A DNA stretch of 64,000 nucleotides, from assembly GCA_038496445.1 (NCBI GenBank), contig JALMLS010000122.1:62001-126000 (forward strand). Reading direction: 5' to 3'. Of this stretch, positions 15,929 through 63,799 are shown one piece after another. The position numbers and the translations under genes were made by a program. Below the pieces are notes generated by a model, which did not search any database, was not told the DNA's origin, and was given only the letters and a program-made list of their open reading frames with translations. Numbering within the stretch: position 1 is the first letter of the stretch; each line of letters begins with the position of its first letter. Origin of the DNA: Trichosphaerium sp. ATCC 40318 (Eukaryota; Protista; Tubulinea).

Positions 15929-18900
15929 ATGGCAGAGCCTCTACCTGTAAGAGAGGACAAACGTAAAAAAAAGCAAGCAAAGTCTAAAGGTATGTATAAA
16001 CGGTGATGCCATAGAGCAGTAGACGCTAAAACGGACACTTTGATCTTGTTACTCCGCAATTTTTAGCATAATTCATTGTTTGTCTTATTTACATGTTTCT
16101 AGGCGGCTCCCCACAGTTCAACATCAGTCTAAAAGGTAAATTCCAAAATACAACGTAAAACTCATGTAAGGAAGGTTTGTCACCAAAGGACAAGCGGAGG
16201 AGGGAAGCAAAGAGCAAAAAAAGCCAGCGGGATGAACGCTTAATAAGCTCACGAAGTGAATCTAACCTATAGTACGCTTGTCAAGCCCGCCGTTGTGCGA
16301 CTAGATACAATGAATCTTTACCAACTAATGTCATTTCAGCAAGCGGAGAGTGGTTAAGGCGCCGCAAATAAAGCATCAGCGATCTAAATCGGCAACATTT
16401 AACGGTTCTTCGCGATTACGAGCTAAAGGTCGCACATCGTCAAAAGGAGAACCAAAATCAGCGCGTGGTGCGTAGGGTTTTGTTCTACTTGAGTTTTGCG
16501 CTGATCATCAAGCTGTTTTCTTTTTGGTGAATTACTAACATTTGTTTGTAAAGAGGAAAGTACTCGTGTCAAGCCGAAGAAAAAAGCTAAGATCGGTTCA
16601 CCTTATAATGCACAACACAACCTTCATGTTCGTAAAGGAGAGAAAGGTCTAGAAGGATTACCACCTGTGTGGGTCACAATTTTAAAGGCAAGGTTTTAAA
16701 CCTTTTTTTATTTTTTTTTCTCATCGCCATGTACCTTTTTATGACTTTTTTTACTTTGGTGTTTTTTAATGAAAGTTGGATTAATTATTCAATAGGGTCT
16801 GGGTTACTCTGATGATCAAATATCTGAGAATTCAGAAGAAATTAGAGATGTCATTAATTTTCAGGATACAAGAAACTTACGTGCTTCTTCTTCGTCCACA
16901 GCGTCTCTACCGGAGTCATCTCCTAAACAAAATAATATTCTATGTACGCAAATATTTATAACTTCCTTCTGGGTGGTAGTCAAAAGAAGGCAGCCAAATC
17001 AATTTAGAAAATATAAGTTTGCATAAGGTGGAAAGAAAACGTTTCTAAATAACTATATAGGGAATCACATTGATAGTATGTGCTTGGATCCAAAAGATTT
17101 ATATACAATGGACACCGTCATAGGTATGTAGAAAAACTTGAAGTATTTACAATGATATGCACAAAGCTCTAAAGTCTCGTAATTTTCTACCATTTTCTCG
17201 GTATTGAATTATAATTTTCCTGGATATTGTATTCTGCGCATTGCGAATACTCGGCATTAACGTGCAAAATATCATCAACTTGTAAGACAACGTACAAGAA
17301 ATGTACAGTGAGGTTTTCGCCAAAGTAACTGGTTTTTGATTGTTTTTTTTTTGTGGTCAACTACTGTCATTGTTTCGTTCTAACAACTGTTTATGTAATA
17401 GGTGAGGGCTCTGAAGGTGTTATATATAGCGGTAAAGATCGTATATCAAACAAAGAAGTTGCTATTAAAAGCATGAATCTTAAAGAAAATGAGCTTGATC
17501 GTACAGCTCAAGAACTTCATATTATGAAGACGTGCAACCATGAAAATATTGTAGAATTTTATAGAGCATATTATTGGGATGGTAGGCTATATATTATACT
17601 TGAATATATGGATGGTGGTAGCCTTGCTCATTTACTTCAATATCATAAGAAATTTCCTTTTTTAGAGCGTCAAATACAGTTTGTATGCTTTAATGTTCTT
17701 AATGGATTACGTTATTTACATAAACATCATCGTATGCATAGAGATATAAAGAGCGATAATGTTCTTTTAAATACTAAAGGTGCTGTGAAAATCGGAGATT
17801 TCGGTTTTTGTGCACAGTTAACTGAAGTTCAACAAAAAAGGAATACAGGAAGTGGAACACCTTACTGGGTACGGCAATATTGTTTTTTATAAAATCTTTA
17901 TTTATTCTTTTCAATATCCCTGATTATTGATTTTAGATGGCACCAGAGAGTAAGTGTAGAACGACAACGACATTAGTTTTCTTTTTTTTTCAGGCTGTTT
18001 TTTTTTTTGACATTTTGATTTTTTTGTGGCTTCTGTTTGTCGTCTTGGTGGTAAAATAGAAATATTGATTACTCATATACATGTAGTTATACGTGGTAAG
18101 AAGTACGGAACCAAAATTGATATTTGGAGTCTTGGTAAGGCTAGCTTTTTTTTTTTGTTGTAAAGTTTCTAATCTTGTTTTTTTCAATAGGTATACTCTT
18201 GATGGAGATGGCTGAGGGTTTACCTCCTTATTTTGACATGGCAGAGTTTGATGCTCTGTTGTATATTAGAAAACATGGCGCACCAGAACTAAAACAGCCA
18301 TCACAATGGTCAGATGCTTTCAAGGTACGAGAAACTTGTATTTACTAGTTTTATTTCAGTTTTCCAAGTTTACTACATTCTGGCATTCTATGCGCTTTGT
18401 GTTAGATATCATTCTTTCAGTTTCTTTGTATTTGTATTTAACACGTTTTTCTTGAAGGGGTTTTTAGCATTGTGTATAACAAAGAATCCTGCTTCACGTG
18501 GTACTAGTAGTGAACTATTACAACATCGTTGGATGACTGTGCAGGCTCTAGATGCCAATCAAAGGCGTATTGTACCTATAATAGATGCTATAAAAGCACA
18601 TAAGGAGAATGAAGTCATAGCACTAAAAGCTAGAGCGGTACGCCATTTTTTTTGATTGAATCAAATTCTCAAAAAAAATTCTTGAAAAAAAAAGGTAACC
18701 AACAATTCTACTCTTGTGCTCTCTCTTGAAGTAACACAAACCAATTATTTTACAACAATAGAGTAATACCAAGCGTGTTGCTTTGTGCAAATTCTTTTAA
18801 GTAATGTAGCCAAACAGGGGTTTTTTGAAATCCTTTAAAAAAAAATTCAGAAATATAGTATCGCTAAGATGACTTTTAGGCTCAGCATCTTGTTGATATT

Positions 18901-19026: not shown

Positions 19027-19402
19027 AGATGCACAAAAATTACTAGTATCCTTGTGAATAAAAACACTAGTGGAGAAGGTGGCATTGGCTTGTGTTTTGA
19101 AGCTTTCTTTTAACTTAAGAGCAATGAATCCTATTCAACCAAATTTTCACTGTTCCAATATGAGCACGCGAAAAACGGACCAGTTTTCTCTTGCTTGGTC
19201 AGACAAACAATAAGAAAACTCGCTATTTTTAGCTAGGTCAACTGTATACTAAATTTGTAATAAAGTTTGACCTTCACGTGAATGCAGAAACTATTATGTG
19301 TACGCAACAAGCTCCTAGATTTTTTTTTTACACTTGGTGTACCGAGGACGAACATATACGTTCACACTTCCTTTGACTTTTTATTGTTCGTGGTGTCGCA
19401 AT

Positions 19403-22400
19403 ATGCAACGACCAGAAGCGGATAGCACTGCAAAGTCTACAAAACCAGGTTTTAGCGCGCTATGGGCTCGTTTAAACCACGCAGCCCCACATACAACTTT
19501 TGGTACAATAAACTATCTTCGTCTTTCTGTACGCACCCTGTGCACCTTCTAAGGTGAATGTAATATACTTACATGTTGTTTAGCGTAATATTACTACTGT
19601 AAGTGTAGTAATTGCCTTGGGAGCCTTTTCCATCACGTTTTCCTCCTATTTAAACTATTTCAAAACCAACCAGTGTACAAACTTCTCCCAAGTGTTCACT
19701 GTACGTTGTTATCTACAAGTTTAGCTTATACACACGGACAACTGACGTTTAAGACTGAATAACGGTTTTGTTATTTAACGTTAAGCTCTTGATTAACACG
19801 CTAAATTACATAGCGCTAGTTTCGAGTCAGTTCCAGTCAGAAGGCTTTGCCATGAAGCAATGCAATATTAATTTAACGCTCTGGGCTACTTGATAAACAC
19901 TACACCGATCAGTAGCAAGCACTTGACATTCCTGACTACCAAGCATATGAAGTACTCCATAATAATCTCATAATGTTACCTGTCAGTGTTCACAACCTAT
20001 CTCGAAAGATTAGGTATTTTATACTCTTACCACGTAAAAGTGTGCACGTGTTTATGTTTGAGAATGGCTTGATTTTCGTGGTAGTTACTGAGCATGAAAG
20101 ATATTAATGACAAAAATAGAGATGAATATTAATGTATTTATGGATGGTTGTGAAGACTGACAGGTAACCCTTTGAGATTATGGCTTACTTTATATGCTTG
20201 GTAAGCAGAAATATGTCAATTGCTTGCTACCGATCGCGAGTGGTCTTTTATCAAGTCGAGCATTAAATTCATTTGCGTTACTTCATGTCAAAGCCTTCTG
20301 AATCTGGAACTGAATCGAAACTAGCGCTATGTAATTTAGCGTTATTTCGCCTCAAAAGCCCAACTATTCTCCGTCAATTCCTCGATGTCATCTAACAATT
20401 CTAACATACCTTCTTTTTATATAGAGTGTGTCTTGGTTTGCACCATTTTATTTAGAGCGAATAATTCAAAATTTTTGTGTCGGTTTTTATTATGGTAGTC
20501 TAATATTACTATTTGTGCAATTATTTAGAGACAGGTATGTTTTTATTTGGCAAGTAGCCATTCTCTCATATCTTTCTAGACAACAACCATTGTTTAATAT
20601 TAGTAAGTATACATATGAAAAACATATCACAGTATTTCTTGAAACAGCATAAAGGTAAAGTTGCTGAACAACTTGCAAAGAGTTATTCAAAATATGGAAA
20701 AGTTTATGGTGTCTGTACCTTTATATGACAATAAGAAAAATTGTTTGATACCAACAACAGGCAGAAAGTGTTGTAATGAAGCTTATATAACGTTTGAATC
20801 AACAGAAGGAGTGAGTGCTGTTTATCAAAAACAGTATTACAAAAAGTGTTGTAAACACCAAGAAAGGTATGTCCAATCCTTTAAAAGAATCTTTCTTAAC
20901 TTGCACGACTATTACTGACTCCTTATTGATAGAAGAGTAAGGGCTGAAGTACCACAGGTACCAGAAGCAATCGATATGGACAAATGGTCTGTCCAGACTT
21001 CATTCTATCGAAGGGGTTTTAGTATGAACTTTGGGGTTTTTTTTTTACTTGTTTTGTTTGTTGAACTTGGAATTAACACTGGATAATAGTGGTAGTAGTG
21101 ATGGCTGTAATACTTGGCCTTATCTTAGGAAGTTCTGCTGTTATTTGTTTGAGATACACTGTGAGCCTTATCACTGACAATTCAGCCAGTGTTTTGTTAG
21201 TTTAATGAGCGTTTTCCTTGTTTCTATTATTGAAAGCATTCTACGTGATTTATCAACCTGTATGTTGGTCACATGACTCACTTACCTTAAAACAACCGCA
21301 ATTCTCATTCATGAATGATATCTAAATTGTTTTCTAGATATCACAGACAAGTTAATTTGTCACTCTAACCGTTCTTTCAAGGTACTGTTGTGTTTTTTTT
21401 GTGGTGTCAAACTTTTTGCTATTTCAGCATATTGACACCAAGGATAACATATTTCAAGAGTTTCTGTGATATTAATGGTATAATTGTAGCAAATCAATAT
21501 AGTTTCTAATTACCAGATAATACGAACAATTCTAGTAATTGTTGTAATCACGTATTGCTTTTCATCAGTAGTACAAATGCAAAACGACTTTAGAGATAGG
21601 GAGCTATTTTTGGTTGAAAGTACAGAACAAGAATTTTCACGTATTACTGGACTAGCTTATACCGATGCCACTCAATTCTTGGTAAAACTTAACACCTTGA
21701 ACTATTTATAGCGTTTTTGCGACTTGCTCAACTTTTTTCTTAATTTATTCTTATTTCTTTTAGATTTTATTCTCAGCAATGTCAATATTTATTGAGAATT
21801 TTGCTGAGCTTGTGAGACCCAAAAAACATTTAATGGAATACTTTGGTTTATGGTACGTCTTCTAACACCTGATAAAGATCACAAAAGTGCCTTTAAGTCT
21901 GATTTTGTTGTTAAGTGTCAAAGATGAACCAGAGTTTCCTCTTGGAAGCAGATATGGTAGCCTAGCTGCTGATAGCATACCAATGGTGTTAGCAGTTAAA
22001 ATAAGCTTTGCAATATTTATATTTACAGGGATAAGTTGTGCCTGTCGGTACCTTAGAGACAAATACCTTGGTACACCTTTGTTTGCAAGTTTTTTTTGCA
22101 ACTTGCTTTTTTTTGGGACTCTGTGAAAACAAACAGCTTTGTAATTAAAGTCAATACTAATTGGTAACTTTTAAGTGCCAAACAGATACAAAACAAGGAG
22201 TAAAATGCCATTTAAACTTGATTTTGTTTCACACACGGCAGTTTTGTTAATGAAGTCAAGATAAAGAAAAGTTTATCCTCAATAAGCTAGCTTAACTAAC
22301 ATTGTTTTAATAGGCTCGATTCAAAGCCAGAAATGCCTGACATGGTGTTAACGATTTTGCCCTTTATTACAGTAATAGCAGCGCTCATTTGTGAGAAAAA

Positions 22401-22683
22401 TAAGCAGTCAATGAGAAAAAATCAACCTTCATTGGGATCTATTTTTATTGGTTTCTATCCTTCTAGCAGAACATATCTTGGACCCAACATAACTTTTGAA
22501 AAAGCAATTGGTATGCCCGAATGTGGAACAAATGTTTGTACGTTTAAACAAAACACAAAGACTTTAGTCCCTTTTTACAGCTATTAACTCCCATTTTCAG
22601 ACTGTGAGTATTACATATCCTTATCACATGGACTGCACTTAACTGAAATCTACAAGTCGGAAGCAACAAATGCAAGCAAGTAA
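19403..22683 (+). CDS. OSCA/TMEM63 (CSC1)-like multi-pass membrane channel, divergent; some exon boundaries uncertain
   Basis: N-terminal TM segments, cytosolic region with VPLYD...AYITFES and PQVPEAID (compare AFVTF and APEPxDI), further TMs, and PEFPLGSRY. Confidence 0.55.
19798..20342. repeat. Long imperfect inverted repeat (arms 19798-19997 and 20146-20342) inside a ~0.7-kb intron
   Basis: The outer 28 bp are perfectly complementary (acgctaaattacatagcgctagtttcga). Pairing continues for ~200 bp with mismatches and small bulges, and there is an extra stem in the loop. Confidence 0.95.
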
Positions 22684-22852
22684 ATAGCTCTGTTCTCTAA
22701 ATTGAAATAGGCTACATGTCCTTTTGTACCACGAAAAATACATATCTGAGGCATAGTCACTTTTAGCTGACCCAACGTTTTGTTGTTTACAATGAAGGAG
22801 TAGGTCAAAAGCAATCATTCATGTTTATTTACACAAAAAAAAAATCTCTATT

Positions 22853-24823
22853 CTATGAAGTGTCCATTTTATCCTCACCGTCCTCTGTCTTCCCTTCTTT
22901 TTCCTTCTTTACATATGCAATAACTGCCTTCAAGAAAGCTGCGGTACCGACACTTGATCCAAGGTCAATATTAGTAGTATCAATACCAAAGGAGCGTAAG
23001 ATGGAAGGTCCTTCCTGAGATAAAAGAGTGAGTACAACACACGAACAAAATCAAAAAACTTTTCACAGCAAAAAAAAAAAAAGGTACTCTTTGTAGACAA
23101 AGTCGTGAAGTCACGTGACATCAAGTCTTCAACAAGTAAAGTAAAAAATAAAACTGTTTCTATGATGCTAAAGCAATCATTCATACCGATAAAGTAAGGA
23201 AAGCAAGCGACTAATAAACAAAAAAGCAAACAGAAAAAGAAAAACAAAGATGAGTCGATATCGACTCTCTTTACAAAAAGATCTTATTCAAACGTACTTG
23301 CTGGCAAGCAGCTGATAACATATCAGCAGCTTGACGGAACTGAGGCGTTCTCAGAGTAGCTTCAAGAACACCAGGAGTCTCACGATCTTGTTCAGGTAAT
23401 AGTGCCTTAAGGTTAGCTTGGATCTCTGGATCATTTAATGCTCCGGATTTAATAATAGCCTCAGCATCGAAAACATTACCCAACGAAGGTCCTGTAAAAG
23501 AAATCTCATCAGAAAACAGAAAAAAAAAAAAAATAGGACATTCGTCATTCCTTGCTTCACTCACCTTGTTGGCCCTGTACTTGTGGTCCAAGGGTTTTAA
23601 GGATATTTTCCAAGTCCATAGCTTGAATCTAATAGGTATTGGGTAAGAACAGAAGCTCAAGAGCAACAGTAACTACAAAAAGAGGCAAAAAAAAAACGAT
23701 TTCCTAAAAAGAACGTACTGGCTCTGGCTGCGCTTGTTCTGGGGTTGCAGCTGCTTCTTCTGTTTCTGCTGCTGCCGCTGCAGCAGGAGAGCTAGTAGTA
23801 TCACTTGGTGCATCTCCTCCTTCTGCTGCTGCTCCGCCGATACCTGCTCGTCTCAGAAAACGCTGACGTTGTGTTTGAGTAAACATACCTACGAAGAAAC
23901 GAGTTAATACAACAGGTAAACGCGAACGAAGCGCTTATGACTTTCTACAAAAATACTGAGCGCAAGGCGCTCCCTTTTGCTCAAAAGCGATTATAAACGA
24001 ACACCAAAGTACTAGTAAAGCACTAGAAGGGTTTTTAGTGGTTTTAACGTACCGAAGTTTCCAGCAAACATTTGCAAGAGTGCGTTCTGGTCAAGACCTT
24101 CTAAACCAGCTGCTGGAGATGGTTCTGGTTGAGGTGGCTCATTCATGTACTTGTTAATCTTAGTGCAGTACTCTTCGTCCTTATCTTCTTTGGCTTCCTT
24201 TTTAGAGCGTGTTAGTAGCGTTTAGGAGGCATGTAAAGCGCTATTGGAAGCAGCTGTTACTGTTTGGTTTTTTTTAACTGACAACGTCTACATAAACGCA
24301 AGAGAAGCTTTTGATGCTGTAGAATCGAACAGTAGCGAAAGATATGCGTTCTAAAAGGGTGACGTACTTGTAACCAGAAAAAGAGCTTCTTGTCGCTGCT
24401 CTTGAACTCTAGGAGGTACACGCGACCAGTTTTACATTCTTTTACACGACGAAAGTGAGCGTCGTCTGGAAATATAATCAGATCCTGATTAGGTTAGCCT
24501 ATTGATTACAAAGGAGATAGGATATGGTATAGCGTACTGTTTGGGCGACACCTGTCGCTCTCTCTTTCCAAATGAAATGAATAAGATTATCTGCGGACTA
24601 GATAGCGTCAGCGCAACAAAATAATCAGTTTAATACCAATTTTAATTGAACAAGCCCTTTTCTTTTGTCTGGGCGAACCCAACGTGTTTTGGCATCTTTA
24701 TGCATTAACCCCGCTTTAAATTCAACAAGGACAGACTTATCCTAACAAATATCGATTAATAACGGTCGTATTGCTTTAACTTACGCCTTGTTGAGCCTGG
24801 GGAGCAAAGAGGTTCATAGACAT
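22853..24823 (-). CDS. RPN13: Proteasome ubiquitin receptor Rpn13/ADRM1
   Basis: Pru domain LVEFKAG...PDKRKGLV...LIHFIWKER...DLIIFPDDA...TGRVYLLEF...FFWLQE, and C-terminal DEUBAD-like LRTPQFRQA. Confidence 0.93.
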
Positions 24824-25894: not shown

Positions 25895-26650
25895 TCAAGG
25901 CTTTCTGTAGATCATATGGCCAGGACGATGTTCACAGTACAGCACTTCAATATTATCGGCAACATACTTGCAGTGACCTTTTAATTTACCACTTTCAAAC
26001 CAACTTTTGTATTCTCCGTGCCTCTTACCATTAGAGAAATAAAGTTGATATTTCAATTGACCACTATTATACCACCCTTTGTATTCACCTTCTTTTTTAC
26101 CATTCACACAAAAGTAATGCTCTTGTAGATAACCAGTTATTCTCCAAGTCTTGCATTCACCTTCTCGTTTGCCATCAACGTAATACCAAGCCTCCTCTAA
26201 CTGTCCGTTGCTATACCACCCTTTGTACTCGCCATGTATCACTCCCTTAGAGTACACATGATGCTCGCATATTTGACCATTCTTATACCAGTACTTGTAA
26301 TCTCCGTCGTACATGCCGTCTACAAAATTACACTGACTGCTTATTTGCCCGTCTTCATAATATTGTTTGTGTTCTCCATGGTTTACACCATTTCTCCAAT
26401 TACTTTGACGAAGAACTATGTTATTCGCCAAAGCAGTCTGTTTCCACAAACCGTGTTTGTTCATCTTGTCGTCAAACCTTGAAGTCGTCGCTGTGTATTT
26501 GGACAGAAGAGGCCATAATCTATACACTTCTACATCCAGATCAGCGATATCTAGATGTAATTCAACAGGAAGGTCAAAAAGGTGGCGACAATCTAGTTTT
26601 GCAATTGCTTTCGGTTCTAAGGGTAATTTACGTCTCACGTTGCTTGCCAT
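25895..26650 (-). CDS. Intronless F-box-like plus MORN-variant (MORN_2) repeat protein, giant-virus-like
   Basis: LFDLPVELHLDI (F-box-like start), then about six 24-aa G.YK.WY.NGQL....Y..GK.. repeats. First ATG at 26650. Confidence 0.85.
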   Translation of the reverse strand: MASNVRRKLPLEPKAIAKLDCRHLFDLPVELHLDIADLDVEVYRLWPLLSKYTATTSRFDDKMNKHGLWKQTALANNIVLRQSNWRNGVNHGEHKQYYEDGQISSQCNFVDGMYDGDYKYWYKNGQICEHHVYSKGVIHGEYKGWYSNGQLEEAWYYVDGKREGECKTWRITGYLQEHYFCVNGKKEGEYKGWYNSGQLKYQLYFSNGKRHGEYKSWFESGKLKGHCKYVADNIEVLYCEHRPGHMIYRKP

Positions 26651-27619: not shown

Positions 27620-27900
27620 TTTCAATACTTTGACTCCTTACTCTGCTACTTCAGTATTAAATACGCGAATTGTATGAACCTCAAAAGAGCTTTAACACCT
27701 TCATCAGTTACTGAAGTATAACAGAGGTGAATAATATGAACACCAGCAAGTGCTTTAATACCTTCATCTGTTATATTCTTACACTATTGAGGCGTACGTC
27801 GAAGGCTTTAATACCTTTGTCAGTAACTGAAGAGTTATAAATGTAAATAGTTTGTACTCAGGAGAGGCAATGAAATGGCATGTTTGACAAGCTATATCGA
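27620..27900 (-). pseudogene. F-box/LRR family relic
   Basis: Minus strand reads IACQTCHFIAS / VQTIYIYNSSVTDKGIKAF / CKNITDEGIKALAGVHIIHLCYTSVTDEGVKAL / VHTIRVFNTEVAE*GVKVLK, with frameshifts and a stop. Confidence 0.85.
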
Positions 27901-31400: not shown

Positions 31401-34400
31401 GTGTCACAGTGTTTTCAACACGAACATATCCTTTAGGGGTATAAAGTAAGAAATCCAAAAGAAAACACTTTTTTTTTTTTTGCTTGTACCTCTTCCAGAA
31501 CGTATTGCCGTGATTTCTCCTATTGAGTCAACTCTGATGACATCAGATGCTTTACCATTATAACCACCAAGCTCCATGTAACGATCATTGAACTAAACGA
31601 AAGTCATAAAACTGACAGGAAGGGAAAAACAGCTTCTGCCTAAAAAAGCAACTGACTTTAAATAAACGTTGTACATACACTTCCTTCGCTAGTAGTACGA
31701 AGCTTGTATTTAGCTCCAGGTACCATAACAATCATACTATTACAAGCACAATCATCTGTTTTAAGAGCAAACTCCTGAAGAGTAGTAAAAGAAGATGTAG
31801 CTTCAAGTTGTGTTGTTCCAGCAAAAGCTTTTCCTGTAGGGTCGAATACAGAGACCTGAATAGTAGCTCTACCAGCTTCCGCACCTAGTATTCATGTATA
31901 AGCATACCACTTAAAGATATCGTAATATAATAGTACCTTTGACGACAATAGCAGGAGCATACTGTGGAGACAAAGTAACATTAGCTTGGTTAAATATGGA
32001 CATCAAACCAAGAATGTTAGGATGAGATATACTCCATTGGAACTCAAGTGGTATACCAGCCCATGCGAGTGGTGTTTCACCATCCTCTCCCTTTATAAAA
32101 AGAATTAATTATTGTGACTCTACTCCACGCTATAGCTAAGAAACAACGTACTTCAACGTGAATGGTTTGACTTCTTCTTGATAAAATTGTATTTGTCCAA
32201 GTACGTATCATTAAGCCTTCCAGTTTCTTTACAGTGATCTTAACAGCGGCTTTGCCTATCTCAAGAGCTTGTCCAGTAATAGGTTCATATGTAGTCATTG
32301 TGACGTATGCTGTTGTATGACCGACCTTTGTAGCAGATACTACACCATTAACCTTATTGATACTTGCAATATCTTCATGGTCAACATCCCACTCAACCTA
32401 AATACGCATAAGAATATTCATCCAGAACTTTAGTAATGAACTGAAGGAAATCTCATGAACGAAACAACAGCACTTCGGAAAACCAGAAAAAAGGCGTACA
32501 TCACGTGTTGGTGGACCACCCTTGTAGGTGAGTTGAAACTTAGCTCCTGGAAGTAGCACAAGGCTTCTTTGCACAACTTCCAATGGTTCAAAAACATGAA
32601 TCTAAGCAAGAGTAAGAATGAAGCAAAAAAAAAAAAATGCAAAAAGATTTCTAGCGAAGAATGGTTTCGATCCATTGACCTTTGGGTTATGGGCCCAACA
32701 CGCTCCCTGCTGCGCCACTTCGCTTTTTACGTTGTAATAAGAAGGAAATAAAATGTAGTCTTTCAAAATTATTCTAAAGACTACGATTGACTAGTTTTTG
32801 AGCTTAGACTGTATTCATTTCGTACTGGTTTTGGGTCAGATGCCACAGTATTACCATTATGGGTAATAAGGGTTGCTGAAATACGGACTGTACCAACAGA
32901 GACACCTCTAACGTAGAATTGGCTTTTCTCAGTCTTATCACGCCTAATGGATGCACCATTGCTATCAAGGGTGATGTCCACGCGAACGTATTTGTATTGA
33001 TCCTATAAACGAAGTTACAAATCGATTACAATTTAAAAAAAACGTCATGTTTCTCGTTCATCTGTAAAAGGACGTTAAGCTATCGTACCACTCTGAATAC
33101 TGATCCTTCGCTATCCAGAATTTGTACTTTCAACGGTATTTCATTACCGAGCTGTACAATGGTAGTAGATGTGAGAATTAAATCTGAAAAAAATAACGTT
33201 AACTTTGCTGTCTAACAATGCACCAGTACCAGATACATGGGAAACCAAAATACGAGTTTCTGAAATATCAGTACCACCCAAGCACATATCACGAACAGAA
33301 ACCTATAAAGAAGATCAGAACTTACTCTTCAAGTTCAACAAAGAAAACAAGAAAAAACAGTTTACCTTAACAACTCCAGGTGCTTGTGGTATGAGTGTAA
33401 CTCTACCATTTCGCTCAGGAGTAACCTTAGCAATCTCTGTAGAATTTACAGAGAAGCTAAATTCTCCACTACCACCTGCCAACCTCAATAAAGCTTGATT
33501 CTTTGGGTGCAAAATGAGAGAAAGAGCAGGTGGCATAAGTTTGACAATTGGATGCAAATAAATACGATAAACGTTTTGTATAGGAACAGAAAATCGTTTG
33601 GCCACTGTTGGAATAACACGCATTGCATCTTCAGTATAACCAGAAGCAGTAATAGTCAAATCAACAGTTCCTAGAGCAGAGTTTTAGAAAAAAAAAATAC
33701 GAGAATGGAATACATACCTTCAAAGTCCGCAAAGTCAACATAACGTGCAGGCTGTCCAATCTCTTCAGGCGGACCTTCAAGGAAATTTGCGACAGTCTAA
33801 AATCCATTAAGATCAGGGCAATATAAACAAGCTGCTTTGTACATTGTTAGATGCTGTCCAAGTTAAATCTAGTGAAGTAAAGTTTGTAAAACGATGACCT
33901 TCCTCATCATATGCTGTAACGTTAAATACAAGTAAACCATCATTTCTAAGATCGTATTGTTCAGGAAGACCTCCTTTAGACTCTTCCAAGTGATTCAAAA
34001 TAGCTATAAGAGCACATAAGCTCAAAGATCCTTCAAAAAAAAATAAAAATCGATTGCTTACTTTCAGCACATGTAGGAGGAATATTAGCCAACGCTGTTT
34101 CTAGAAGAGTAGCTTCAAGATGGTGGAGTGTTGGGTATAATAATAGGTTCTTTGGAGTATGGCAAGAGATATAAAAGCTTAACTCAGCATCAGCTGGGAA
34201 CCTATTATCATCACTCTCACTATTGGAATAAACCAATTTCGCCAACTAAAAAAAATTAGTAAGATCTCAAAGTTTAAAGTGTCAACGATTAAACAGCACG
34301 AGTTGTTAGTTTTGTTGAAAAGTGAGCGTGCTAGTACTTACTTGGTCTGTTTCTTCCAAACAGGTAATAAGGTATGTCCTCAAATTACCTCTCACAACAC

Positions 34401-49489: not shown

Positions 49490-50785
49490 TTACATACACA
49501 TTCTTATACGATGTTTTTTGTTTATAACTTCCTGTACATCATTCAAATATTTGATTCCCTTATCTGTTATCCCAGAACAAAAAGATATGTTGATACTGTG
49601 TACACCACACGCCAAGGCTTTCAAGCAATCATCTGTTACACTTGTACCTGATAAATTAATAGTATGCACACCAGCCAAAGGCTTAATACCATCATCTGTT
49701 AGGTCAGAAAGATTGTATAAGTCAATAGTGTGAACGCCAACTAATGTCTTAACACTGTCATTTGTCAAATTGTAGCAATAGCCAAGGTTAATAGAATGTA
49801 CTCCAATCAGTGCTTTTATGCTTTCATCCAACACCATTGTATGACTGATATCAATAGTGTGAACTCCAGCTAACTCTTTAATACCTGCATCTGTAATTTT
49901 TAGACAGCCACTTAAGGCTATGTTATGAACACCAGCCAACGCTTTAAGCCCTTCATCTGTTACTTTTGTGTTACTGATACTGATAGTATGAACACCAGCC
50001 AACTCTTTAATACCAACATCTGAAACGTGTTCACAATTGCTTAAGTTAATCGTATGAATTCCAGCAAATGCTTTAACCTCTTCATCACGTATATAAGTAA
50101 AACTGACGTCAAGGTTATGAACACCAACCAATGCCGTAAAGCCATGCCAAATGTTTTGACAGTTCTTTAAGCTAATAGTATGAGCGCCAGCCAACGCTTT
50201 AAGCCCTTCAGCTGTCACCTCTGTACATTGCATATTGATATTATGAGCACCTGCCAACGCCTTAAGACCTTCAGCTGTCATCAAATTATTGTACCCAATG
50301 TTAATGGTGTGTACGCCTTTTAACGCTTTGAGTCCTTCATCCGTCAGTTTGGTAGCACTAACATCGATCGTATGAACACCAGACAATGTCTTAAGGCCTT
50401 CAGCTGTCACTTTAGTACTTCCTAGAATAATAGTATGAATAGAACCTGATAATTCTTTAATGCATTCGTCTGTAACTTCAGTATTGTAACCATCAATATA
50501 AAACGCTTCTTTTAGATACTTAAAGTCCGTAGGCTTCAGATTGCACTTCAAATGGACTTCGAATTTTTGTATAAGCGAGGGACATGACTTAAATATCTCC
50601 GCAAGATTTTCTCTGCTGCTAATTTTAATAACACGTTTTTTATAGCTGTATAAGCTTGCGAATAGAGAGCATGTTTCACGTAAAGGCTGTATACATGTGC
50701 TACTGATGAAATTGAATACAAAAACCCACATCTCAATTGGTAGGCATGGTATATCATCAGCAATACGATTAGATCCTTTATCCAT
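49490..50785 (-). CDS. Intronless F-box plus LRR protein (about 13-14 repeats of 22-23 aa)
   Basis: LPIEMWVFVFNFI...LRETCSLF (F-box), then repeats of GVHTIxLSxTxVTDEGLKALA. Confidence 0.92.
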   Translation of the reverse strand: MDKGSNRIADDIPCLPIEMWVFVFNFISSTCIQPLRETCSLFASLYSYKKRVIKISSRENLAEIFKSCPSLIQKFEVHLKCNLKPTDFKYLKEAFYIDGYNTEVTDECIKELSGSIHTIILGSTKVTAEGLKTLSGVHTIDVSATKLTDEGLKALKGVHTINIGYNNLMTAEGLKALAGAHNINMQCTEVTAEGLKALAGAHTISLKNCQNIWHGFTALVGVHNLDVSFTYIRDEEVKAFAGIHTINLSNCEHVSDVGIKELAGVHTISISNTKVTDEGLKALAGVHNIALSGCLKITDAGIKELAGVHTIDISHTMVLDESIKALIGVHSINLGYCYNLTNDSVKTLVGVHTIDLYNLSDLTDDGIKPLAGVHTINLSGTSVTDDCLKALACGVHSINISFCSGITDKGIKYLNDVQEVINKKHRIRMCM

Positions 50786-51360: not shown

Positions 51361-53743
51361 TTACAATAGAAGCATTGACAATAATACAGTAAGAACAGCA
51401 ACACCAACATGCGAAGCAGAACTTGGTGCTATTGGCGTAACAGGTGCTACAGGCTCAACAGGTGCAAGAGTTGAAGCTTCAGTTGGTGCTGAAGTAGTTG
51501 GAGCTACTGGAGCAGTTGGTGTTTGATCAACATCAGACTCTAAAGCTTCTTCATTTACAGTTGCTGAAGGATCCCACTCGAATGTTTCGCAATCTTCTCC
51601 ATCTACAAGTTGAGCTATAACACGTATTTGTTTCATGCCAACTTCTTTAGGTTGACGGTTTGTGACGTTAGCGTTGATCTTTGAAATGACCTTCAAAACA
51701 ACAGCCACTTCTTTTTCTTCGTCATCCCAAGTAGTACATGTTCCTGTTTTCTTAGCTCTGAAGATAGCACCACAACCACAAGTAATGCGATTGAAATCAG
51801 TGTTATCTGGGTCATCCTCTAGAGCACCAAAGTCACCACTGCAGCGGAGATGGAGGGAGATTACACGTCTATAACAAAGTAAGAATAAACTCCTTAAAAA
51901 CACTAGGCTTTCCAAAAAAACGGTCACGTACGTGGTGTTCTTAGTTTTTCTGACACATTGTGACAAAGCTAAAACGCTTTCAATACCAGCGCCAAGAGGA
52001 GATTCATCAGCGGAATCCATAGAATCTGCGGTAGCAGCTTTTTGTCTGAAAGACATACTGCACCCATCATCGAAAGACATTCTTTGGACTATTGTTGCAA
52101 CTCCAGGTCCATTTCCGTCATTTCCAGTAGTGTCATTAGCATCAGTAGAACCTTCTCCAAGGTCGATTGAATCTTCTCCTTCGCCATCAGTGACCATGTT
52201 GCGAGAATTCAAACAAACATCTGGATCATCAATATTTTCTTCAAGGCAATCTGAAACTCTATCGAAAACCATTTCGAATGTAGTCTTTGAAGCATTCTTA
52301 CATTTTGCGAAAGCACATCTTACAAAAGGTGCTCTGGCTGTCGTTCCATTATTTTCTTTGACAGTAGATACACACTGGCATGTTGTCAGTTCAAAGAAAA
52401 AAAAGACAAAAAAAACCGATAGTTGTGCACAATAACTTCAACGTACGTTTGCGACGTCCTCATCTGGGAAATCGATAGGTCTTCGCACTGCAGTGGTAAC
52501 TACTCTTCCGTCTAATTCTTCTTCTACATCAACATCACCAGGACGTGTTACGTTGCATACTTTATCAAGCGCAACAAGTTTTGATCTGCTTTCATTTCTG
52601 AGACTTGTGCTGTCGTTTCCAGAATTGGCACGTGTACAAAAGTTAATGTAACGTCTTCCAGCTTTACGTAGGGCAAGACAAGGAGCTGAGCAAGTCTAAA
52701 GAGTATAAGAGAACGGCAAAGGTAAGTAAAACAAGATACGTACGTTGTTCTCCAAAGCGCTCTTGCAAACATTGAACAAACCAGCGATTCGCTGTCTTAG
52801 TTCGCCACATCTTTGAACTTTGTTACAAACCTCTTTACGTTTTTGAACAAGAGGCTTAAACCTCTTCATGGTATCAAGAACAGCACTACGATGAATACAG
52901 AATCTTGCAACATTAGCTAGAGCCTTTAATCCAAAATCACATCTATCATTGCATGCTCCTTCGAGGATATTGCTACGAATGAAACAATTTGTTACAACGC
53001 TATCTGCAAGTTCCTTGAATCTATCAAATAGGGAACCTGGACATTTACGGTCTTTTGGAGGAGGTGAGCTAAGAACAAGTGAGTTCAAGAGAACAATCAT
53101 AGAACAAGAAAACAAGACGGTAAAACTTCAGTTTGGAACGTACCATTGCTGTCTCAAGAAACCGATAACACGTTGTACATCGATGTTCGATCCATTCATA
53201 CTTTCGTTTCTTACTGCGTTATCTAGACGAGCATCTTTGATACAAAACGCAATAGCACGTGATCTGTTTTTGTATGCAATTGCGCATTCTGATGTATTAT
53301 CACATGCTCCAGGGATACGTCCTTCATCGATTGTAAAGTTATCTCTGGTTACAGCACGTTTCATAACTTCGTTACTGAATTCACTTGGTGTACGAGAAGG
53401 GAGATCGATCATGTCATCCTCCTTGGCCTTAAAAGGAAAGTAAGAACAAATAAAGAAAGTGTTTAAAAGAGCTTGGCGTACTGGGCGTGTTGCGTTATTT
53501 ATTTTATCCAAGACTGGTTGGCATTTACGTAGGATAGCGCTAAAGTCCACTTTAGAGCAATCAAACTCGTCTTCTTCAACTGCTGAAGAGAGTACTATAG
53601 TTGCAAAGTTAGATTCAAATTCGATGCACTATAGTGTGCGAACAACAAAAAGGTTCTTTCCGAGTGACCACAAAAGTACGACAGTTGTATCATCATAATA
53701 ACTTACCTATAAAGCACGAAAGTAATATGAGCAAGAGCTTCAT
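51361..53743 (-). CDS. Cys-rich, probably GPI-anchored surface protein (multi-exon)
   Basis: MKLLLILLSCFIVLS signal peptide, regularly spaced Cys, a Pro/Thr/Ala stalk, and C-terminal SSASHVGVAVLTVLLSMLLL* (GPI signal pattern). Confidence 0.8.
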
Positions 53744-59335: not shown

Positions 59336-60579
59336 TTCTATAGCCAAGACTTCTTGAGGTTAAAGAAAAAGACGGATTGCAAACAAGGAAATAAAACCAA
59401 AAATTCGCCTTGTTGTGATCTCCTTGTGAAACCTAAGCTGGGTGTTTTAGGACGTACATTTGTCGCTGTGTGTCTGATAAAGAACTTAAAGGTCCATTTG
59501 GTGCGGTAGGACTGCAAATAGATTGAAAAGCTGCATTGATTTCTTGTTCGATTGTTCCTACCATCTCAACTTTAGCTTTTGTAATTGCATCCTAGAAAAA
59601 CCAATGCTTAGAATAACATAATGATCAATACTAGTCATACTATTAAAGCAACGAGTGTATGTCCAATATGATCTGGAGAGCTACGTCGTGGTGGTAAGGA
59701 CAAAATGCAACAAAAAGCGAAAAAAAAGTGATAAAAATTTCAAACGACAACGCACGTGACAGGCTCTGATACACATTTTTCTAGTTCAGAGCATAGAGAA
59801 ATTATATTATTAAGGATTGACATACGTAATAAATGATCTACATACGATGAGTACTTGGAATAAAAAAAAAGTGAAAATAAAAAAACATAGAATGACAATT
59901 GACAAGTTTTTGCTTACCATCATGACCATTTCCTTTAAATTTTTTACCACATACACGTTTCCCTGTCCTAGGGAATAGTGATGCTAGACCAGATTTCTCT
60001 ACACAGGCCTTTGGTATATTAATAAGTCACATTGAAGTAGATCGTGATTTCTATTGCTAATTTCCAGCGTACTTTCAAAGGTTTTGTATTTAATTTGCTT
60101 CCCAAGCGTTTTATTAATGTATAAGAAGGAACACGCAATGGATCTGTTATTCTTTGTTAGTAACCAAAAGCAATCAATATGTTTATGGTCTACAGCCATT
60201 TTACACGCGTTTCATACCTTTGACGAACTCCTCTTCGCGGTTTAAGCCTTTTAAAAATTTTCTCTAATAAAAAGCGTTAAATTATTACTGTAGCACATAC
60301 TTACGTATCTGACATCCTTTGAGAGCATGCCAGCGTACAGAGTACACTGTGTCATTAATTTTATAGCATTGTGGCTTTTAGAAAGATACAAGGGTTCTCC
60401 CAAGCGCACTGTCAAGCCTACAATGCTGTTTCACTAAAACAACTTTTAACTGAGATAGTCGTACATCCTGGTTGCGAATTGCTGTTTATTGTCACCAATG
60501 GAGGACCATTCATTGTGTAAAGCACTTGCCACAACAGAACAAGGCGCTTAATAGCAAAACGAGTCTCACTTAGCTCCAT
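59336..60579 (-). CDS. Hypothetical protein (multi-exon; termini uncertain)
   Basis: Six internal exons join in frame with GT-AG sites (…MLSKDVRY/RKFLKGLNREEEFVK/DPLRVP…/ACVEKSG…/VLIVCRSFIT/SPDHIG…/DAITKAK…). No family recognised. Confidence 0.5.
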
Positions 60580-63031: not shown

Positions 63032-63799
63032 CTAAAAGGTATACACGCAAGTCCCATTCAAAATTGTAAACCATTCCCCTGTAACATTAGTGGTATGTGC
63101 ATAAATAGTGTATGTTGGTGCACCAACAAGTACTTTTATGCCTACATCAGTTATTGAAGTGTTATTAAGGCTTATGGTATGAACTCTGGTGAGTGCTTTA
63201 AGACCTTCATCAGTAACTGAAGTGTGATCAAGGTAAATCTCATTAACTCCAGCAAGTGCTTTAATACCTTCGTTGGTTACTGCAGTATTGCTGAGGTATA
63301 TAGCATGAACCCCTTTAAGTGCTTTAATACCTTCATCAGTTACCAAAGTGCTGCAGAGGCCAATAGTATGAACTCCAGCAAGTGCTTTAACACCTTCATC
63401 AGTTACTGAAGTGTTAGCAAGGTGAATCTCATGAACTCCAGCAAGTGCTTTAACACCTTCATCTGTCACTGTAGTATTAGAAAGGTAAATCGTGTGAACA
63501 CCAGCAAATAGTTTGATAATGTTATCGTCGAAACGACGTCCTTTAAACGTGATTTTTGTGTATTTAAGAATACCAGCATATTTCGCAGCTGATTTTGCCT
63601 GAACTGGTGTATTAATTGTAATGGCGTGATATCCAATAATATCGTGAATGATAGAAGCAAACAAATAACAAGTCTGACAAGCTGCAAATCGTGATTTGGT
63701 CGTTTGACGCAAGATGTGCGCTAACATCTCTGTAGGTAGCTGTAACAAACTCGTACTGGTGGTGTCAATTTTAGAACGTTTTGAGGTGGAAAGCATCAT
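63032..63799 (-). CDS. Intronless F-box plus LRR protein with near-perfect 66-bp repeats
   Basis: LLQLPTEMLAHIL...CQTC (F-box), then six 22-aa units GVHxIxLxxTxVTDEGxKALx. Confidence 0.92.
   Translation of the reverse strand: MMLSTSKRSKIDTTSTSLLQLPTEMLAHILRQTTKSRFAACQTCYLFASIIHDIIGYHAITINTPVQAKSAAKYAGILKYTKITFKGRRFDDNIIKLFAGVHTIYLSNTTVTDEGVKALAGVHEIHLANTSVTDEGVKALAGVHTIGLCSTLVTDEGIKALKGVHAIYLSNTAVTNEGIKALAGVNEIYLDHTSVTDEGLKALTRVHTISLNNTSITDVGIKVLVGAPTYTIYAHTTNVTGEWFTILNGTCVYTF

Follow-up and report, generated by a model that had tools for sequence, protein, structure and literature searches.

The locus lies in a 64-kb window (by which we mean the whole stretch of DNA that was analysed), where a protein-kinase gene at 17353-18655 on the forward strand (Pkinase, E = 8e-45 for its first exon in Pfam) is followed by the gene that hosts the foldback described here. 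Between its introns of 68 and 137 nt, the kinase gene carries a micro-exon of 13 nt (17937-17949) that encodes MAPE. It may be noted that GTACG, in place of GTAAG or GTATG, forms the 5′ splice site in 2 of the 4 kinase introns and also in the introns of the host gene that start at 19529 and 19701. On the other side lies a gene for an Rpn13/ADRM1-like proteasome receptor; its 3′ part (22856-23666, complementary strand; RPN13_C, E = 1.4e-10) runs toward the 3′ end of the host gene and bounds the latter to about 19280-22700. The features that concern us are as follows.

19584-19700, forward strand: upstream exon in frame 0, ending in phase 0 (...NFSQVFT), hydrophobic and membrane-protein-like.
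19701-20424, forward strand: inferred GT-AG intron of 724 nt (179 nt without the foldback), delimited from reading frames and splice signals.
19798-19997: left arm of the inverted repeat, about 200 bp, GC 0.405, its outermost 28 bp pairing perfectly with the right end.
19998-20145: central region or loop, 148 nt, GC 0.30, in which the palindrome continues in strongly degraded form, with large indels.
20028-20083: inner loop stem of 11 bp, TACCACG (20028-20034) with CGTGGTA (20077-20083) and AAAA (20036-20039) with TTTT (20073-20076).
20146-20342: right arm of the inverted repeat, 197 bp, GC 0.396.
20392-20396 and 20401-20405, forward strand: two branch-point-like CTAAC motifs, 29 and 20 nt before the 3′ splice site, from reading of the sequence.
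20425-20602, forward strand: downstream exon, internal, starting in phase 0 (SVSWFAPFYLE...).

Elsewhere in the window there is a family of F-box and leucine-rich-repeat genes (Pfam LRR_6 and F-box-like) with members at 49490-50785 and 63032-63799 on the complementary strand, at about 27685-27780 and at 8-178, so that at least 4 paralogues or fragments are spread across the window. The family is built of 63-nt (21-aa) repeat units with the motif '...AGVHTI...', and there is 80% identity between its F-box ends at 84-178 and 63668-63762. A single-exon gene at 25895-26650 on the complementary strand encodes a MORN-2 repeat protein (PF07661 in its relatives), the best relatives of which, only about 40% identical, come from the MMETSP marine protist transcriptomes and from JGI. 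The sole Rfam or ARAGORN match in the window is a tRNA-Met (CAT) gene at 32652-32724 on the complementary strand. Between 51361 and 53550, where the GC content is slightly higher (0.39-0.40), there are long ORFs on opposite strands that overlap one another, namely 51361-52272 (-) with 51932-52435 (+), and 52696-53115 (-) with 52949-53443 (+) and 53128-53550 (-); no Pfam domain was found in ORF 51364-52272 (-), one of this set. By exact look-up none of six full ORFs of the window is present in a collection of 15 billion proteins, and because of this the source organism appears to be poorly sampled.

The first-pass annotation had placed the foldback inside an intron of about 0.7 kb, and the logic of the sequence supports this, since splice signals are present and open frames run in phase 0 on both sides. 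The 5′ splice site reads GTACGT (19701-19706) and the intron ends in TATAG (20420-20424) with a pyrimidine run upstream, the repeat beginning 97 nt after the former and ending 82 nt before the 3′ splice site. We take the downstream exon as internal because its 75-codon open frame has no ATG. Also within the exon 3′ of the hairpin there is a 45-nt segment at 20535-20579 (GTATGT...CTAG) which keeps the frame whether it is spliced or retained, and it is possibly an optional micro-intron. On delimiting the neighbouring introns by hand from frames and splice signals, we obtained 68, 137, 56 and 133 nt for the adjacent kinase gene and 55, 80 and 66 nt for the other introns of the host gene. All seven thus fall within 55-137 nt, in agreement with the earlier statement that the intron with the foldback is the longest and that local introns are mostly below 150 nt; it is 5-13 times the length of these neighbours.

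The identity given earlier to the host gene, "OSCA-like", was not confirmed by the searches, which took exons singly and covered Pfam, PDB chains and a large phmmer library. No match to the RSN1_TM, PHM7_cyt or RSN1_7TM profiles was seen in exon-by-exon Pfam searches, none to the solved OSCA/TMEM63 chains in five single-exon searches of PDB, and no OSCA/TMEM63/CSC1 relative of the exon 20425-20649 in a phmmer search of 1.84 billion representatives, where the matches to this exon were two repetitive proteins of no known family that are apparently spurious. By eye, some of the exon translations resemble OSCA/TMEM63 motifs.

The foldback itself, reported earlier as a structure of about 545 nt at 19798-20342, was confirmed at these coordinates. 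An inverted-repeat scan gave collinear arm blocks running from the outermost pair, 19798-19836 with 20304-20342 (39 nt, 97% complementary), to the innermost pair, 19962-19997 with 20146-20181. On comparing the hairpin to the window by BLAST, positions 1-200 were aligned with 545-349 at 82% over 206 columns (E = 1.7e-49). A global alignment of the arms only contains 170 matches, 21 mismatches and 8 indel events (15 gap columns), that is, 85% identity per site. These counts fit the earlier description of arms of about 200 bp with a perfect base of 28 bp followed by frequent small mismatches and bulges. The termini of the arms are their best-kept part, with 97% over 39 nt as against 73-87% further inward, and a perfect base of 28 bp has P of about 0.012 under uniform decay. 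Palindromy persists in degraded form nearly to the centre of the foldback, with about 60% residual similarity and many indels.

RNA folding gave a minimum free energy of -270.9 kcal/mol for the forward strand and -262.2 kcal/mol for the complementary strand, where shuffled sequences average -124 and -116 (z = -25 and -24, respectively) and 0 of 100 shuffles fold as well. The minimum free energy structures contain 173 arm-arm pairs, of which 4 (forward) or 6 (complementary) are G:U, and the uninterrupted helices of the stem measure 28, 18, 13, 13, 10 and 10 bp. The extra stem in the loop that had been pointed out before (taccacg-aaaa/ttttcgtggta) is part of this fold; its centre is about 11 nt from that of the large repeat, and it is probably the remnant of the original palindrome tip. 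When the whole intron is folded, the stem is not extended toward the splice sites and the flanks stay unpaired, so the hairpin is a discrete module and a longer stem reaching the splice sites was rejected.

The differences between the arms comprise 9 transitions and 12 transversions besides the 8 indel events. A stem selected as RNA on one strand is expected to build up G:U pairs on that strand. The mismatches compatible with G:U number 3 in the sense and 6 in the antisense direction in the arms, and 7 and 7 overall, which upholds the earlier observation that such changes occur on both strands and leave the strand undecided. At the DNA level the complementarity is symmetric, with no signature specific to an RNA strand, and therefore these differences give no positive sign of constraint at the RNA level; they look like neutral decay. 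RIP-type mutation was also considered and rejected, as transitions do not dominate.

The search for copies agrees with what had been read from the window before, in that no second copy was found there of the hairpin, of its terminal 22-mer (allowing up to 3 mismatches) or of the intron flanks, for which blastn gave no significant parent sequence in the window either. The foldback is the sole long inverted repeat in the 64 kb, the other pairs being low-complexity A/T matches. Exact scans of the terminal 22-mer in metagenome and prokaryote-genome collections, of an inner 23-mer in the metagenome collection and of a terminal 21-mer in viral contigs gave zero matches, in collections that barely sample eukaryotic genomes. 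The earlier claim that the foldback holds no ORF also stands, as the longest frame is 44 aa from a start codon and 63 aa from stop to stop; no Pfam domain was found in six open frames that span it (37-63 aa each), and a word search of the protein collection with the 63-codon frame gave no match.

The ends of the foldback were then read against what is usual for small foldback or MITE elements. Two features of this class are present, namely terminal inverted repeats (39 nt at 97% complementarity with 28 bp perfect) and a small, non-coding unit (545 bp, longest frame 63 codons). Dispersed copies, which are also usual for the class, were not seen within the 64 kb, where the foldback is single. 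A further feature, a flanking target-site duplication (TSD), is absent, as had been noted before: there is no clean TSD of 4-12 bp, and a search at the ends and up to 12 bp around them gave neither an exact TSD (4 bp or longer) nor a near-exact one (7 bp or longer). An offset TA or TTA would be the only possible TSDs, and these are at chance level in AT-rich DNA, while candidates of 8-9 bp, counted by hand from the flanks, match at only 4 of 8 and 3 of 9 positions. Tandem subrepeats were not found in the arms, and an arm structure of the Drosophila FB type was rejected on this ground.

Our preferred reading, held at about even confidence, is that the foldback is a decayed non-coding palindromic segment of DNA, of the foldback or long-TIR MITE type, that was inserted in an ordinary intron of about 179 nt. 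Several lines of evidence taken together favour such an insertion, namely the symmetry and neutral look of the arm differences, the composition and the size of the intron. The arms have a GC content of 0.40 and no A/T run of 6 or more, where about 2.3 such runs per 545 nt would be expected from the average of the window. The GC content of nearby introns is 0.22-0.30 in 4 of the 5 measured and 0.40 in the fifth, and because the arms differ in composition from those 4 local introns, the foldback does not look intron-derived. As for size, removal of the unit would leave an intron of 179 nt, near to the local 55-137 nt, and this also seems to favour insertion. The missing coding capacity and Rfam family, and the fact that the hairpin is a discrete module whose stem stops short of the intron flanks, point the same way. 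The good preservation of the termini is as would be expected if transposase binding had constrained the ends within a family, though the perfect 28-bp base could also reflect a constraint on the base of an RNA stem. That the foldback was once mobile is something that we infer from the sequence. Against insertion, a clean TSD is missing, though a decay of 6-9% per side should leave a TSD of 8-9 bp recognisable, there is no second copy in the 64 kb, and none was met in the metagenome, prokaryote-genome and viral collections, which hardly sample this organism.

If the unit was inserted, it would have arrived whole in the intron of a gene for a multi-pass membrane protein, and by folding onto itself in the pre-mRNA it would leave the intron open to splicing. 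Counting from the 5′ splice site at 19701 to the A of the nearer CTAAC (20404), there are 703 nt in linear form and 97 + 62 = 159 nt in folded form; thus, with the stem closed, the spliceosome would see a distance between 5′ splice site and branch point of 159 nt in place of 703 nt. Where introns measure 55-137 nt, a self-collapsing insert would be much more readily tolerated than one unable to fold, and this would be why the insertion has persisted. The hairpin would then be a tolerated passenger, and any dicing of the stem into siRNAs would be a by-product and not a selected function.

Among known systems, the nearest to such an insertion are foldback elements and long-TIR MITEs, such as Tm1 of the Mutator/Foldback family in root-knot nematodes (PMC3169594) and plant MITEs (PMC5172404). 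Like these, the foldback is below 800 bp, non-coding, made up nearly entirely of two long inverted arms with the termini best conserved, and placed inside a gene. It differs from them in having no recognisable TSD, arms free of tandem subrepeats, a single copy in the window and no terminal motif that we could assign to a superfamily. With introner elements and the SOS splicing of DNA transposons (PMC12779559) it shares the tie between inverted-repeat transposons and removal from mRNA. However, an introner spans the intron and supplies its splice sites, whereas here the foldback ends 97 and 82 nt inside the splice sites and so does not supply them, the flanks being unique and unpaired. Also, Tc1 copies inserted in introns did not undergo SOS splicing in that study (PMC12779559).

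An immobile palindrome formed in situ remains a serious rival to insertion, and one that we rate as possible but unlikely. Here an inverted duplication, for example by template switching in replication, would have produced a palindrome that has since decayed, with its centre eroding fastest. The missing TSD and the single copy in the window are both on its side, as is the palindromy that runs nearly to the centre, where the inner stem, the similarity of about 60% and the many indels are typical of palindromes stabilised by central deletions. But it needs an ancestral intron of about 500 nt in a neighbourhood where introns are 55-137 nt long, and arms with a GC content of 0.40 and no homopolymer runs are unlike 4 of the 5 local introns measured.

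A further rival takes the foldback as a functional intron-hosted hpRNA or proto-miRNA, the stem of which is freed from the pre-mRNA or from the intron once spliced out and is diced to siRNAs or miRNAs of about 21 nt that regulate targets in trans; we consider it rather improbable. The label of miRNA precursor that was first put on the hairpin is not supported, as 545 nt is unusually long, no Rfam family matches and no signature of an RNA strand is present. Amoebozoan pre-miRNAs are mostly 75-125 nt and those above 200 nt are called unusual (PMC11014262), and a hairpin of 545 nt, being 4-7 times this usual size, thus falls outside the precursor size typical of miRNAs and counts against the small-RNA reading as a whole. 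In Rfam the best match was MIR1886 with 17.4 bits against a gathering score of 62 (E = 2.2). Given its 545 nt, it would class as an hpRNA and not as a miRNA precursor, and the extended duplex from a long inverted repeat that marks hpRNAs is present here (173 arm-arm pairs, z of about -25). An imperfect duplex of about 200 bp in a pre-mRNA would be a physically plausible Dicer substrate of the hpRNA type.

The small-RNA reading draws on the long and stable stem with uninterrupted helices of up to 28 bp, on a base that is better kept than the rest of the stem and, if the intron model is right, on the transcription of the hairpin within a gene. Precedents also exist. Intronic miRNAs are known in Amoebozoa, as are rare hairpins of more than 200 nt, of which only two have been found among amoebozoan pre-miRNAs and interpreted as newly evolved, that is, as young miRNAs (PMC11014262). 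Hairpins derived from TEs or from inverted duplications are known sources of siRNAs and young miRNAs (PMC3086885, PMC10317233). On the opposite side, besides the length and the missing Rfam match, the strands show no asymmetry, and neither G:U pairs nor transitions are in excess. Nor did blastn and tblastn of the hairpin find any homology of the arms to a target gene in the 64-kb window, at the DNA or protein level, and the only arm-complementary sequence there is a 24-nt match with 3 mismatches. This is the stretch at 59896-59919, which matches hairpin positions 402-425 in the right arm at 21 of 24 nt (blastn E = 0.03); it lies apparently within an intron of a gene on the complementary strand, beside a GTAAGC 5′ splice site, and we dismissed it as a target site and attribute the match to chance.

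The same balance is seen on comparison with known small-RNA loci. The hpRNA loci of Drosophila that make endo-siRNAs (PMC10317233) are likewise inverted repeats of several hundred nucleotides with an imperfect duplex of about 200 bp, but they are defined by their siRNAs and by homology to a target gene, whereas the present case is known from its sequence and has nothing target-like in the window. With the miRNA precursors of amoebozoans and plants, including TE-derived MIR genes (PMC11014262, PMC3086885), the foldback shares the hairpin shape, and some of these are also intronic; young miRNAs can moreover derive from long, near-perfect foldbacks (PMC11014262, PMC3086885). It differs from these precursors in the length and the absence of an Rfam family, as given above, and shows no sign of one precise duplex.

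That the stem exists in order to join the 5′ splice site and the branch point, as a selected splicing aid of the zipper-stem type, is very unlikely in our estimate. As geometry, the earlier suggestion of a structure that brings the splice sites together is sound, since the folded distance of 159 nt is close to the 55-137 nt of local introns where the linear one is 703 nt, and such stems are documented in long yeast introns (PMC2536676, PMC12350175). Intramolecular pairing cuts the effective distance between 5′ splice site and branch point in those introns also, but the yeast zipper stems are short and pair native segments of the intron, whereas here we have a self-contained module of 545 nt that neutralises its own length. 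The stem offsets only the length that it adds, and the intron without it is 179 nt and needs no aid. Because of this, a splicing role explains why the foldback is tolerated and not its origin or function. Finally, an assembly artefact such as a chimeric palindromic read is hardly credible: palindromes can come from long-read or amplification chimeras, but the arms differ by 21 substitutions and 8 indels, and the unit lies internally between stretches of unique, collinear exon sequence whose reading phase is consistent.

If the foldback is only a decayed palindromic insertion, as we prefer to read it, it would be an ordinary genomic feature of modest value, serving as an example of how a genome with very short introns can tolerate a large, self-folding intronic insertion. 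The more consequential proposal is that it is a young intron-hosted hpRNA or proto-miRNA locus, co-expressed with a membrane-protein host and giving siRNAs that act in trans, in a protist without close protein relatives in public databases; to this full form we assign only a small probability. If small RNAs are produced, the locus would show, as few others do, how a hairpin small-RNA locus is born, in a eukaryote that has been little sampled, and if the proposal is true, it would capture the step from a palindromic insertion to a regulatory small-RNA gene outside plants and animals.
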